Assembly: GCA_023334545.1 (NCBI GenBank)
Contig: JAADVB010000026.1
Location: forward strand, 53,086 to 117,085
Direction: 5' to 3'
Source: Salisapilia sapeloensis CBS 127946
Taxonomy: Eukaryota; Protista; Oomycota
DNA: 64,000 bases
The notes beneath the pieces were generated by a model. That model ran no database searches and had not been told where the DNA came from. It worked only from the letters and a program-made list of their open reading frames with translations. Below, one piece after another: positions 53,404 through 57,276 of this stretch. The position numbers and the translations under genes are program-made. The first letter of the stretch is position 1; each line of letters opens with the position of its first letter.

Positions 53404-55186
53404 ATGGCGACGGAGACCATGTGCGTCGAGTGCGAGGACACGGCGGCGGCCGTAAGATGTGAAACCTGTCAAGATGTCTATTGTGAACTCTGCTTTGAAG
53501 ACCAGCATCGCGCAGGTACGCGTCGTACGCACAAGACAACGTCCTTAGGCACGCCTGAGATCGAATCCAAGGACGCAAGCCACGATGCTACTTCCCAGCC
53601 TCTTCCATCACAACTTCCTCCAGCACCAGCCACAAAAGTACAGGACACAGGTGCAAAGGCTCAGTCGACAAAACCCAAGGAGCGACAGGTCAATCGAACG
53701 GACGTGCAGGACGATAGTGACGACGAGTCCGACGGGCTGGACGAAGTGTCCGTGCTCCTGCGATCAGCCAAGTACATTCCATTGCGTCTGTCGGAAGAAG
53801 AGCGTGCTTTATATACTCTACTAGATGCATCTCTAAACGTAAGCGAGTACACGGATAACGTCGACGTTCTATCGTATCGTTCGCCCGTGAAGCGCATCTT
53901 ACAGGAGCTCGCGGAGGCCTTTAGCACCGTGTCGGGCATGATGATCGCGAACGACTTTCGTAACGGCCGTCGACTCGTACAGGATAAGAAACTAGAGGAC
54001 AATGGAGACTTTTTCCGGACGCTCTTTGAGATCGGGAGGCGATACAAGATCATGAATCCAGGTACACCTCCTTCCCTCCAACCTCGTGTGCATGTATTAA
54101 ACAATTAGAACAGAACGTATGCGGAATAACTATGGCAAGATGATCTACTTGCTCCAAGATGCGAATCTCAAGGAGATTCGGAAGCAATTAGGTTTCTCGA
54201 GCGTCGGTGACATCCGTACGGTTGGCCAGCTACTGAAAGAAAAGGACGGGAGCGACCTCCTACAAGACGCTCGATGCGACATCGCGACGGCAGTCATCAC
54301 AGGCGACCCATCCACTGCCAAGGTGCATGCAGAAGAGAAGAAGCACGCGATGGAAGACCTCATCGCAGACTACACTTCCCACACACTATCGGAAGCAGAT
54401 ATTCGTCTATGTCTAGAATCCATTGGGGATAGTAAGAGTTACATTGCATCCAATCGTACGCCCATCACACGTATGATCGAGTACCTCCAGACGTACTTTT
54501 CTCCTGATAAGATCGAACAGCCTTTTAGTCTCGAAGTACGTGCTGGGAAACGCGGCGCGAGGTTGTCGCATAGCCACTCGACACAGTACGAGTACGTCCT
54601 CCAGAGTCTTTTGCTCTGGCGGAACATCACTGCATCGATGCTGCGTCTGTGGTGGGCCGTCGAGTCCGACCTCCTCGGCGGATCCATGTACAGGCTCAAG
54701 GACACTGGGCAAGGGCTCAATCGCGTGCAACATGCGCCTACGACCTCGAGACTCGTGCACGACATCTTGCACGAGACTCAACGCGCGCATAGTCGATGGA
54801 TCGGCTCTTCGGTCGTGCATCTAGGCGACCGCGACGTCCCGAACGCACTCATGTTTATCGACAAGTACACGCAGATCTCTCGTATCCTCAGTCCAATTGT
54901 CAATACGTTGGATGAACTAGAAGAGCTCAGTCATAAACCAGAGACACAGACGTACATTATCGATGGCTTTGGTGGCGTCGAAACACTTCGGAAGACGATC
55001 CTGTGCGATTTCTTTCAACATGGATTCGACGGTAGTGGGGCAGATAACTTTTTCGATGCTGGATCATGCATCGACGGTCGATTGACGAGTGCTTGGAACT
55101 GGTGTTCTCAGATTGAAAAGAAATCCTTTTTCCACGTTTTCCTCATGGCTGGCTTCGTCGGCTTTGACGGACAATTCGAAAAGTAA
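53404..55186 (+). CDS. UPF0652/DUF2009 protein with N-terminal B-box zinc finger, 2 exons
   Basis: B-box CVEC...CETC...CELC...HRAG..RRTH. DUF2009-like AKYIPLRLS, FEIGRRYKIMNP|ERMRNNYGK, RLSHSH, HLGDRDVPNALMFIDKY, FDGSGADNFFDAGSCIDGRLTSAWNWC. Intron at 54062-54113. Confidence 0.85.
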
Positions 55187-55280
55187 AAGATGAGAAAGAA
55201 TATACTTTGCTATTCTCGTCTTGATTGAAACTGTCGTACATGACCCTCTGTGTCCTCTAGTATTTCCTTCATTTATCATC

Positions 55281-57179
55281 ATGCGATTCCTATCGCTCCT
55301 TCTCTTCATGCAAATAGTTGACGCACAGAATCAGTGCTCTACTAGCTGTGGTCTACCGTCCGGACTGTCCTTTTGTCGACATATATCGTACGCTGTCTGT
55401 AAAGGAGATCAAGGCTTCCTTGCGCAAGATCTTGAGGCGAGACGAGCAGTCGGGAATTGGACGAACGAGCCGATGGCTACTTATCTACTAACGTCCTTGC
55501 CGCAGTATCGTCATGCGTCCAAGTCGAGACAGAAGTCTATTATCGCTGCGATGAACTTGACAGACACCCACGGTGCGTGCTCTAATGTCTTACGTCGACT
55601 CTATTGCTCCATCCACCTCCCAGTGTGTGAGGTTGCCAAGGACGTATCGCGACTATGCTTGGAATCGTGCGAAGAAGCAGTAGATGAAGAATGCCCAGGG
55701 CTCGCGAATGTCTGCTCGCTAGTGCAAGAGGAAACTGGTGAACTCGCCGAGATGGACCTGAAGTGCGTCCCGTTTGATTATAATGGTCCTGCCGTCGGTA
55801 TGTGGGTGGCAGGTTTCCTCATCTCGCTTGTCTTTTCAGTACTTAACTCGGTTGGGATCAACCTCCAGAAGCTATCTATGCGTAGAAATGCTTCTGCTCG
55901 AACTAAGAAACATACATGCAAACAACCGCTATGGGTACTCGGTTTCGTCCTCGTCTGTTTAGGCTCGATCCTTGACTTTGTGGCGTTTGGTATGGCGCCA
56001 CAGACACTGCTGGCACCGCTTGCAGCACTTTCACTCGTCTGGAATATGCTCATTGCTCCATCTTTCCATAAAGAGCGAGTCACGAGGCACAACTTGCTTG
56101 CTACGTGCATTATCTTCACGGGTGTCACGCTCACAGTCATCTTCGCTGGACACAGCACGCCTTCTTACGAACTACAAGACCTCATCAAGTTGTACCAGCA
56201 GCCAGTCATGTATATTTACATTGCCTGCGTCGTTTCGTTTCTCGTCATCTTGTATCTGCTCTGCATATACATTGAACGCAGTGGTAAGCGCGAGAATGGC
56301 CTCATGCACATCGTATGCTATGGAGGTATTGCTGGCACATTTGGAGGCCAAAGTGTGCTGTTTGCCAAGTCAGCAGTGGAATTGATCAAGAGCGCTGTGT
56401 GGGGAGATGCAGGAAACGAAATGTTTCGTCATTATGCCTACTACTTGATCAACGGATCGCTTGTCATCTGCTTGCTGTGCCAGATCCGCTTCCTCAACGG
56501 CGGTCTAGCTCGCTTCGATGCACTCTTATTGTAAGCTTGCTTCACAAAGATATATCCTATCGCTTTTGTACTGATAGATACATTCTAGGGTACCTGTCTA
56601 TCAATCGTTCTGGATCCTCATGAGCGTACTGGGCGGAATCATGTACTTTGAAGAGGTAAATTCTTCTCATCATTGACAAGAGTAACCCAGAGATTATATG
56701 CTCATGCCCTGCTATTGACATGTAGTACGCTCATATGACGAGTTTTCAGATCCTCATGTTCACCATCGGTGGTGTGATCACGATCACAGGGATCATCGTT
56801 CTCCTCGTAACACGAAAGAAGGGTGTTGACATGCAAGACTCAGTAGCAAGCAGGAAAGGAAGTCAATATGTAGAAGTGGTGAGTGGTCCCGTGATTACCG
56901 TTGCCCAACTCTGATGTCCGCGACGGCTGACGGTTCTTGTAGCAGGGATTGACACCTTCTGATGCTTGGGACGTGGATGACTCGGAAGATGAAGAGATGG
57001 AGGTATTCCTTGCCAAAAACACAAAGCCATCTTCAAGTGAAGCTAGCTCAAAGGCGACCGTCGCCAGGTCACCTGAGAGACTAATAAACCAGAGTGGATC
57101 CATACGCGATAGCCATGCTGCTTCCACGAACGTAGATCTTAATAGTAGTGAAACTTCAGGCGAAGAAGAGTTCGTATAG
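55281..57179 (+). CDS. NIPA/DUF803 magnesium-transporter-like protein with signal peptide and N-terminal Frizzled-type Cys-rich domain
   Basis: Signal peptide MRFLSLLLFMQIVDA, then a Cys-rich region (C..LRRLYCSIHLPVC...LCLESCEEAVDEEC), then NIPA motifs GINLQK, LWVLGFVL..LGSILDFVAFGMAPQTLLAPLAALSLVWN, QSVLFAK, ALLLVPVYQ. Three short 3' introns inferred. Confidence 0.8.
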
Positions 57180-57276
57180 GTCGGATGAAACTAGTAATAT
57201 GAATTCAAAGAGAGTTTCATTTCCTGTAACGACTTTGAGACCCTGCACAAATCAGCTCACTAAAGAAAGCATAGCG

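Follow-up and report, generated by a model that had tools for sequence, protein, structure and literature searches.

Frizzled-type (Fz-type) CRDs are familiar from Wnt and Hedgehog receptors and from a few kinases and proteases, in which they form the ligand-binding head, with the Smo CRD binding sterols and Fz CRDs binding fatty acyl groups. Other members of the CRD superfamily, such as FAM155A/NALF1 on NALCN and fungal Mid1 with Cch1, act as structural or auxiliary caps, while the N-terminal domain of NPC1 feeds the membrane domain of the same protein, and folate and riboflavin binders share the superfold. The structural mechanism of NIPA carriers is only now emerging (2026). Human NIPA2 has nine helices, with the N-terminus outside, where it is short, and the C-terminus inside; its helices 1-3 form a mobile lid, and it transports nucleotides as well as Mg2+ (PMC13500462). 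Its ion-coordinating residues are reported to be conserved without exception across 213 NIPA2 orthologues, with E70A and F256A described as loss-of-function substitutions (PMC13500462).

Here we describe a gene in which these two modules are joined. The window analysed is a stretch of 64,000 nucleotides from the oomycete Salisapilia sapeloensis CBS 127946 (assembly GCA_023334545.1, contig JAADVB010000026.1, positions 53,086 to 117,085), and all coordinates below are those of the window. The plus strand carries a CRD-NIPA gene of four exons, and its coding span, 55281-57179 (568 codons plus stop), is the one given in the preliminary description, now confirmed by transcript contigs. Exon 1 (55281-56530) encodes a putative signal peptide, the CRD, a linker and helices 1-7. 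It is followed by intron 1 (56531-56588; 58 nt, GT..AG, phase 2; removed in transcript contigs X1, X2 and X4) and exon 2 (56589-56655), which encodes helix 8 with the cavity motif P-V-Y-Q-S-F-W, as assigned by homology to Phytophthora kernoviae P0002, with which it is identical at 22/22 residues. Intron 2 (56656-56725; 70 nt, GT..AG; removed in X1, X2 and X3) precedes exon 3 (56726-56878), assigned by tblastn to homologues and a hydropathy peak of 2.54 to helix 9 and the beginning of the predicted cytoplasmic tail, and intron 3 (56879-56942; 64 nt, GT..AG; removed in the contigs of 4/4 runs) precedes exon 4 (56943-57179), the acidic, Ser-rich remainder of that tail, which ends in E-E-E-F-V and the stop codon TAG.

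The transcript evidence consists of contigs assembled from four public runs (X1-X4). Contigs X1 and X2 run continuously from 55208 and 55225, respectively, to 56530, have the three GT-AG introns precisely spliced out, and end at 57210-57216; the 5' UTR spans 55208-55280 and the 3' UTR 57180-57216, with contig ends at 57201-57216. That is, the gene is expressed, and its CRD and NIPA parts are carried by a single spliced mRNA. The genomic ORF 55281-56531 (translation of 417 aa), together with X1 and X2, likewise bears out the earlier observation that signal peptide, Cys-rich ectodomain and NIPA domain share one reading frame, with no intron between them. The 5' UTR also contains an upstream ORF of six codons (ATG at 55240, TAG ending at 55260) in a frame different from that of the main ORF.

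The N-terminus, read by eye from the sequence, starts with M-R and a hydrophobic run leading to V-D-A and a following Q, a pattern of n-, h- and c-regions that suggests a cleavable signal peptide (aa 1-15, 55281-55325) cut after V-D-A. The ectodomain that follows (aa 19-162, 55335-55766) is a genuine Fz-type CRD, as established by Pfam, conserved cysteines, an AF2 model, a fold search and profile-profile alignment. Pfam Fz (PF01392) matched aa 67-142 of the ectodomain alone at 31.5 bits (E 2.8e-7), narrowly missing the cut-off of 32.1 bits, and the whole exon 1 product at 28.9 bits, also below it; five relatives (P0014, P0017, P0047, P0054 and P0100) have a precomputed PF01392 match. The 12 ectodomain cysteines (aa 19, 23, 32, 40, 100, 109, 116, 126, 130, 138, 145 and 162) are invariant or nearly so among 41 relatives. 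Cysteines 3-12, mapped onto what we take to be the Fz8 cysteine pattern, follow the Fz order, with a C6-C7 gap of six and a C8-C9 gap of three in 55/55 sequences, and the first two (C-x3-C) are additional to the ten-cysteine Fz framework. All 12 are retained in both paralogue clades (below) and in distant stramenopiles, which indicates purifying selection on the CRD. Conservation outside the cysteines is sparse (P26, D50, F113 and E117; mean column identity of 27% over the 41 relatives) and, because so few other residues are conserved, lends weak support to a common ligand pocket. Sequons for N-glycosylation are present at N59 and N92.

The fold comparisons placed the ectodomain in the same class. 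Its AF2 model has a pLDDT of 93.4 and a pTM of 0.88, and an unbiased scan (VIA-align) of 48,161 chains of solved structure gave Fz-type CRDs as all of the best 11 matches (Z 10.7-5.9), headed by MuSK at 10.7 and followed by matches at 9.5, 9.0 and 8.6, all of them MuSK, Nrk or ROR2 CRDs, with Fz, Smo, sFRP and Sizzled CRDs at 7.1-5.9. The preliminary description had named the folate receptor and NPC1 folds as comparisons alongside Fz, and the answer is an Fz-type fold nearest to MuSK/ROR (Z 10.7 vs 4.9): the N-terminal domains of NPC1 and NPC1L1 reached only Z 4.9, FOLR2 4.7, JUNO 4.5 and riboflavin-binding protein 3.4, in a search where unrelated folds begin at about Z 4. Thus, none of the NPC1, folate-receptor or riboflavin-binding folds was the best match (Z 4.9-3.4 vs 10.7-5.9 for Fz-type CRDs). 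Foldseek on the CRD model returned Fz-type CRDs in 50/50 top rows, yet none with E < 0.001, and a phmmer search of PDB with the ectodomain matched Fz2 and Fz7 weakly (E 0.095-1), which would not have sufficed without the fold and profile results. At the profile level, hmmsearch with the family profile found Pfam-certified multi-Fz proteins (E 1e-18), among them P0138, which itself matches Pfam Fz at 3.5e-128, with E 2.1e-18, and hhalign of the ectodomain family profile against the Fz profile gave a probability of 97.1% (E 6.4e-11).

The membrane domain is a NIPA-family (DMT superfamily) transporter that is not a canonical NIPA2. Pfam Mg_trans_NIPA (PF05653) matched aa 177-414 at 103.3 bits against a cut-off of 26.2 (E 1.8e-29), human NIPA2 chains 9Z6N/9Z7S were matched at E 7e-15, and hydropathy agrees with the assignment of helices 1-7 to the remainder of exon 1 (55791-56530). 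Exon 1 spans profile positions 5-238 of 295, with helices 8 and 9 coming from exons 2 and 3; exon 2 on its own (22 aa) returned nothing relevant from PDB, and helix 8 was aligned to NIPA2 via the natural homologue P0002. No Pfam match to the Frizzled 7TM domain (PF01534) was found and the membrane domain is PF05653; hence, the protein is not a class F GPCR. A two-domain model of P0002 gave DMT-fold matches at Z 8-10 in a wide structure search. NIPA2 entries were returned by neither fold search, possibly because they are missing from those structure libraries. Foldseek with the same 464-residue model, which is over the advised size, gave ABC exporters at a TM of 0.14, which we rejected as noise.

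The earlier label of a canonical NIPA domain was an overstatement, since 5/11 residues of the NIPA2 cavity or mechanism are replaced (E70S, N73D, G89A, Y253Q and F256W) and G69, S92, S192, K197, Q232 and Y252 are kept. Of the cavity residues reported to be fully conserved across 213 NIPA2 orthologues (E70, N73, G89, S92, Q232, Y252, Y253 and F256), only S92, Q232 and Y252 are retained. All five substitutions are common to the 127 relatives tabulated, and the stramenopile subfamily to which the protein belongs is marked by G-[SN]-x-x-D-F ... P-x-Y-Q-x-[FY]-W. Given this altered cavity, Mg2+ is unproven as the substrate, and the Mg2+ label on CRD-NIPA proteins is best treated in the same way in annotation.

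The P0002 model shows nine long membrane helices plus a short helix in the helix 4-5 loop, and the hydropathy of the Salisapilia protein is consistent with nine helices. The signal peptide, the CRD sequons and the basic character of the loop that follows helix 1 match the NIPA2 topology and point to an N-out/C-in orientation. The juxtamembrane linker into helix 1 (55767-55805) is defined by its spacing across relatives: 14 residues separate the last CRD cysteine from the helix-1 Trp in 53/55 relatives, and the pattern past that cysteine is x4-Y-x-G-P-x3-W, with the W invariant and the Y and G nearly so. By this spacing, the CRD is positioned directly above helix 1. The two-domain AF model (residues 17-480), which is of P0002, 60% identical to the Salisapilia protein, and not of the Salisapilia protein itself, has a pLDDT of 89.4 and a pTM of 0.81, with a linker pLDDT of 84-85. 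At the other end, an acidic stretch and an F-[IVF] C-terminus are common to the clade A oomycete orthologues listed, the Plasmopara model excepted, and this ending presumably resembles an export signal.

The fusion is real, old and stramenopile-wide, is already auto-flagged in databases, and is not peculiar to this genome. More than 70 full-length relatives have the CRD-NIPA architecture, with two paralogues (clades A and B of an unrooted family tree) in essentially every named oomycete match; beyond these, the architecture is present in Cafeteria, Mucochytrium, Triparma and clades from marine metagenomes. The Salisapilia gene is the clade A orthologue, together with P. infestans PITG_05621, P. 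nicotianae PPTG_02790 and S. parasitica SPRG_13727 (identity 55-62%), with clade B represented by PPTG_17308 and A. astaci H257_01318 (identity about 40%). CRD-less relatives with the identical cavity signature exist, a labyrinthulid clade being CRD-less, indicating that the membrane domain can stand alone and that the CRD is accessory. A homologue search from one of these (P0110), aimed at animal and plant NIPAs, returned stramenopile-type sequences only. Long Aphanomyces astaci 'EF-hand' models were considered as a sign of synteny with an EF-hand neighbour of the gene in the window and rejected, their extra part being N-terminal and unmatched in the window.

The preliminary description had linked the protein to sterol auxotrophy. 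However, Saprolegnia and Aphanomyces, which synthesise sterols, and the photosynthetic Triparma also carry the fusion, and this distribution weakens the link enough for us to set it aside. Its statement that animal and plant NIPAs have no such ectodomain holds for human NIPA2, whose extracellular N-terminus is short (PMC13500462). The preliminary description had named an architecture both widespread and already described as grounds for refutation, and this applies by half: the architecture is widespread and auto-annotated in UniRef, where many relatives are named 'FZ domain-containing protein' with PF05653, but we found no paper that describes it or addresses the function of the added domain. 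A literature search, with the work of Yan et al. 2014 on fusions of Fz-CRD domains (Gene 533:229) outside its coverage, returned no description of an Fz+NIPA/DUF803 fusion. Other database names include 'Magnesium transporter NIPA2', 'NIPA-like 3' and the misnomer 'Phospholipase D, Pi-TM-PLD', and PITG_05621 has been mentioned only for its resemblance, as a DUF803 protein, to the membrane portion of Pi-TM-PLD (PMC3056787). Taken as a whole, the earlier interpretation is partly supported.

We favor, with confidence evenly balanced between right and wrong, the hypothesis that this is a secretory-pathway protein whose CRD is a ligand-controlled module that gates transport. Under this hypothesis, the CRD would face the outside or the lumen and lead through the fixed 14-residue linker into helix 1, the acidic tail would be cytoplasmic, and transport would proceed by NIPA2-type alternating access, with the cavity covered by the tops of helices 1-3 as a hinged lid. 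The CRD appears to be rigidly hung on helix 1 and, for this reason, may act as an extracellular control module; that is, its state would decide whether the lid opens and make transport conditional. The most likely input would be a small and probably hydrophobic molecule that occupies the CRD, in the manner of other members of the superfamily. The solute would be a cation and/or a nucleotide-like metabolite; given the differences from the NIPA2 cavity, Mg2+ is not a secure assignment. Ligand-controlled gating is plausible, but it is something we infer, as are ligand binding and the substrate. The more specific proposal, in which the CRD senses a small molecule and gates a solute carrier directly via the hinged-lid helix, strikes us as speculative and rather unlikely. 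If true, no Fz-type CRD would have been shown before to regulate a transporter and not a receptor. It would also suggest that coupling the binding of small molecules to a membrane machine is an ancient, pre-Wnt role of the domain, since the fusion predates the split of the major stramenopile lineages and falls outside the Frizzled lineage of animals, fungi and amoebozoans.

Several points run counter to parts of this model, among them the sparse CRD conservation beyond the cysteines, the replaced NIPA2 cavity residues and the derivation of the pTM of 0.81 from a homologue. When a CRD sits on a channel, its role may be structural and nothing more, as with FAM155A on NALCN or Mid1, and the best structural matches of the ectodomain, MuSK and ROR2, are not, to our knowledge, established open-groove lipid binders, which counts against a lipid sensor. 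Alternatively, the CRD might be a disulfide-rich dome without a regulatory ligand that serves folding, ER exit, stability, dimer packing or wall/matrix anchoring, a possibility that we hold to be clearly the less probable. It would fit the presence of FAM155A (7cm3, Z 3.5) among the structural neighbours and of a Mid1 cluster in the Atlas search (TM 0.54), the low surface conservation apart from the cysteines, and the rigid linker of fixed length with a high pTM in the homologue model; the acidic F-[IVF] tail, presumably like an export signal, would add regulated trafficking. However, the CRD-less relatives with an identical cavity signature imply a membrane domain that needs no cap, and the fold is far nearer the CRDs of Fz, ROR and Smo, which bind ligands (Z 6-10), than FAM155A (Z 3.5).

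Substrate hand-off, in which the CRD would capture the transported lipid-, pterin/flavin- or nucleotide-like metabolite and pass it into the DMT cavity, is more doubtful still. In its favor, the NPC1/NPC1L1 N-terminal domains, JUNO (related to folate receptors) and riboflavin-binding protein are weaker superfamily neighbours (Z 4.9-3.4), the changed cavity (S/D/A/Q/W) suggests another, possibly organic, substrate, NIPA2 carries nucleotides besides Mg2+ (PMC13500462), and the CRD sits directly over helix 1. Against it, the fold is clearly of the Fz class and not of the NPC1/folate-receptor class (Z 10.7 vs 4.9), and the CRD-less paralogues with the same cavity would be without the capture step. 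Finally, that two adjacent genes, one encoding a secreted Cys-rich protein and the other a NIPA transporter, were merged, or that the Fz resemblance arose by chance, is refuted, despite the Pfam Fz score marginally under the gathering threshold and the weak phmmer match to PDB (E 0.095), by an uninterrupted ORF and one transcript contig spanning both parts in two independent samples, by recurrence of the architecture in more than 70 full-length relatives, and by decisive fold and profile-profile tests.

With regard to the favored hypothesis of a ligand-controlled CRD, the fusion offers a natural test of whether a CRD can control an alternating-access transporter and a test of what Fz-type CRDs bound before Wnts. 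Further, the family is found in major plant and animal pathogens, which makes this surface-exposed, lineage-restricted domain on a nutrient carrier a reasonable subject for functional study.

Among known systems, the oomycete database orthologues (PITG_05621, PPTG_02790, SPRG_13727, PPTG_17308 and H257_01318) have the same architecture, and none is characterised. Human NIPA2 (9Z6N, 9Z7R, 9Z7S and 9Z7T; Karuppan et al. 2026, PMC13500462) shares PF05653, the nine helices and the N-out/C-in orientation, and aligns at E 7e-15 over helices 2-9 with low sequence identity, but has no ectodomain, whereas the Salisapilia protein has the CRD. The CRDs of MuSK and ROR2/Nrk (9LGG, 3HKL, 9FSE and 7ME4) match at Z 10.7-8.6 over 105-112 residues with 16-19% identity, share the ten-cysteine framework and are likewise extracellular domains on membrane proteins. 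However, they precede a single-pass kinase and not a nine-helix carrier, and the Salisapilia family has the extra N-terminal C-x3-C and a longer, variable insert of 26-72 residues between cysteines 4 and 5. In FAM155A/NALF1-NALCN and Mid1-Cch1, too, a CRD-superfamily domain lies on the outer side of a membrane protein that conducts cations, but there the domain is a subunit of its own bound to a four-domain channel; no ligand is known for it, and the structural match is weak (Z 3.5, TM 0.54). Wnt and Hedgehog ligands are not known in stramenopiles. Frizzled and Smoothened likewise tether an N-terminal Fz CRD to a polytopic membrane domain, the activity of which the CRD controls there; the difference is that this domain is a 7TM receptor in Frizzled and Smoothened and a DMT/NIPA domain, reached through a far shorter linker, in Salisapilia.

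On the + strand, the CRD-NIPA gene opens as a single long ORF from its first ATG at 55281 to 56531. With six annotated homologues as tblastn queries, and splice sites read at the borders of the four coding pieces found, the exons are 55281-56530, 56589-56655, 56726-56878 and 56943-57179, separated by GT-AG introns of 58, 70 and 64 nt, for a coding total of 1707 nt (568 codons plus the stop). The locus was present at 100% identity in four small public runs (one study, two samples, one organism, library type unrecorded), and contigs assembled from these runs lacked exactly these three introns, so the runs are, in effect, transcript data. Since single intron-free contigs (1817 and 1794 nt) span 55208 to 57216 and 55225 to 57210, respectively, the CRD and the transporter share one mature mRNA, which bears out the preliminary description in that no intron lies between the two domains. 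The upstream gene has its stop at 55186 and its transcript contigs finish at 55209-55220, and those of the CRD-NIPA gene start at 55208-55225; neighbouring transcripts thus meet end to end or share a few bases, and the genome is very compact here (55186-55225). An upstream ORF of six codons (ATG to TAG, 55240-55260) lies within the transcribed 5' UTR, in a different frame from the main start at 55281, and may represent chance or a translational control element.

Pfam placed both domains where they had been described. Mg_trans_NIPA (PF05653) covers residues 177-414 (E 1.8e-29; score 103 bits, threshold 26.2), a sequence match far beyond chance. Fz (PF01392) covers residues 67-142; it scores 31.5 bits on the ectodomain alone (E 2.8e-7) and 28.9 bits when the entire exon product is used, a marginal match just below the Pfam cut-off of 32.1 bits. 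Across 41 aligned ectodomains, 11 cysteines are invariant and a twelfth is almost so; 10 of these 12 match the order and approximate spacing of the Fz ten-cysteine pattern, and the first two form an additional C-x3-C. In a 55-sequence alignment, two cysteine pairs keep constant spacings of 6 and 3 residues, respectively. The AlphaFold2 model based on the 41 sequences (pLDDT 93.4, pTM 0.88) retrieved only Fz-type CRDs among the best 50 Foldseek matches, with weak E-values, and VIA-align gave Z-scores of 10.7 and 9.5 for MuSK, 9.0 for Drosophila Nrk, 8.6 for ROR2, 7.5-6.5 for Fz4, 5, 7, 8 and Smoothened, and 4.7 for folate receptor beta. In a fold search over 48,161 representative chains, independent of Foldseek, the first eleven matches were Fz-type CRDs, followed by the wider CRD superfamily (Z of 4.9 for the NPC1L1 and NPC1 N-terminal domains, 4.5 for JUNO, 4.4 for glypican, 3.5 for FAM155A and 3.4 for riboflavin-binding protein), with unrelated folds from about Z 4 down. 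When 1.84 billion representatives were screened with a profile built from these 41 ectodomains, 178 proteins matched, CRD-NIPA proteins first and multi-repeat proteins (Pfam Fz E 1e-124 to 1e-128) after them, and hhalign of the family alignment against 18 certified Fz repeats gave a probability of 97.1% (E 6.4e-11). Hence, the proposed N-terminal CRD fold stands, and the modelled fold is of the Fz class, not the NPC1 or folate-receptor class. In the ciliate Muranothrix gubernata (P0139) and on unnamed eukaryotic contigs (P0138, P0158, P0165, P0168), single proteins carry 3 to 10 Fz-type domains in tandem; such CRDs are thus more widely distributed among SAR protists than work on Frizzled receptors would imply.

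Full-length CRD-bearing relatives were found in the oomycetes Phytophthora, Plasmopara, Peronospora, Peronosclerospora, Pythium, Globisporangium, Lagenidium, Albugo, Saprolegnia, Achlya and Aphanomyces, and, beyond the oomycetes, in Mucochytrium (labyrinthulid), Cafeteria (bicosoecid) and Triparma (bolidophyte); further CRD-bearing relatives belong to unnamed clades from marine metagenomes and Tara. Two of these oomycetes, Saprolegnia and Aphanomyces, are sterol producers, and Triparma lives by photosynthesis; that they have the family argues against a special link to sterol auxotrophy. The oomycete proteins form two paralogue clades (~570 aa at 55-62% identity and ~660 aa at ~40%), and the maximum-likelihood tree places the window protein within clade A (support 96), leaving a three-way split of it, Saprolegniales, and Peronosporales plus Albugo. 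Its identity to any database protein reaches only 62%, indicating an oomycete that the protein collection does not cover. The relatives without a CRD (Hondaea, Mucochytrium, MMETSP transcripts) group in a single clade of a tree without outgroup, which fits CRD gain and loss alike. The window protein ends in E-E-E-F-V (57150-57179), and the C-termini of clade A orthologues likewise consist of an acidic stretch and then F-[IVF] (D-F-I, E-F-I or A-F-F in P0002, P0003, P0014, P0015, P0020, P0025-P0027, P0032 and P0122), which looks like a conserved signal for sorting or ER export; this ending is absent from the tails of clade B, which share an R-R-S-I-T-F motif instead.

By the standard set in the preliminary description, its reading would fall if the architecture were already described and widespread, and this is half the case. 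Many relatives are named 'FZ domain-containing protein' in UniRef and also carry PF05653, so it is already database-visible and widespread; our full-text literature search found no paper describing or studying the Fz-NIPA fusion. The sole mention of an orthologue found is that of PITG_05621 (P. infestans, clade A), one of three DUF803 proteins with a membrane part like that of Pi-TM-PLD (PMC3056787), a similarity implying a second oomycete fusion with a NIPA-like membrane domain. NCBI and UniRef label orthologues from Plasmopara halstedii (P0005) and Phytophthora cinnamomi (P0333) 'Phospholipase D, Pi-TM-PLD', yet these proteins have no PLD domain, a misnaming probably traceable to the same similarity. 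In some strain annotations of Aphanomyces astaci, proteins of ~1000-1065 aa (P0335, P0338, P0343) join a clade B CRD-NIPA to an upstream EF-hand gene; the extra part is N-terminal and matches nothing in the window, and these are thus likely gene-model merges.

Regarding coupling, 53 of 55 sequences place the last CRD cysteine 14 residues from the invariant Trp opening helix 1, and a Y-x-G-P in between is conserved. A natural homologue, P0002 of Phytophthora kernoviae (60% identical over exon 1), modelled full-length over residues 17-480 (pLDDT 89.4, pTM 0.81; linker pLDDT 84-85), has nine long membrane helices resembling the DMT-fold transporters Gdx, LicB, YddG, Vrg4, PfCRT and the CMP-sialate carrier (Z 10.3-8.1). 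A basic loop after helix 1 and two CRD sequons are consistent with an outside-facing CRD. Human NIPA2, whose structure was solved recently, forms dimers in which each protomer has 9 helices, with the N-terminus outside and the C-terminus inside; a hinged lid, built from the whole of helix 3 and the upper portions of helices 1-2, opens and closes it (PMC13500462). The fixed linker and the homologue model thus suggest that the CRD hangs, apparently rigidly, on a helix that moves during NIPA2 gating, which gives a regulatory reading its structural basis. We propose a conditional carrier in which the extracellular CRD would control the helix 1-3 lid, most likely via a small ligand; this statement as a whole may just as well prove right as wrong, and ligand gating specifically is somewhat unlikely. 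Alternatively, the CRD could be a structural or trafficking cap without a ligand, by analogy with FAM155A-NALCN or Mid1, which we consider unlikely: CRD-less relatives have the same cavity, showing that the CRD is accessory to a self-sufficient carrier, which favours, and does not prove, regulation over an obligatory structural role. That the CRD might capture substrate and hand it to the carrier, as in NPC1, appears quite improbable, and an artefact is excluded.

NIPA2, which the NIPA part matches at E 7e-15, passively carries Mg2+ and nucleotides; its cavity residues E70, N73, G89, S92, Q232, Y252, Y253 and F256 are fully conserved in 213 orthologues, and E70A, Q232A and F256A are loss-of-function mutations (PMC13500462). 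Aligned directly over exon 1, and for helix 8 through P0002, whose 22 residues there are identical to exon 2 of the gene, the window protein retains G69, S92, S192, K197, Q232 and Y252 but has E70->S, N73->D, G89->A, Y253->Q and F256->W. Judged by these residues, 'Mg2+ transporter' is an annotation from the family name, unsupported as a substrate call. A divergent CRD-NIPA clade from marine metagenomes and Tara (P0154, P0155, P0162, P0167, P0169) further carries S92V, S192A and Q232N, a hint that substrates have diversified among its members and their relatives. The altered cavity pattern recurs in 127 of 127 tabulated relatives and in a further set, with the signature G-[SN]-x-x-D-F ... P-x-Y-Q-x-[FY]-W, and thus defines a distinct NIPA subfamily.
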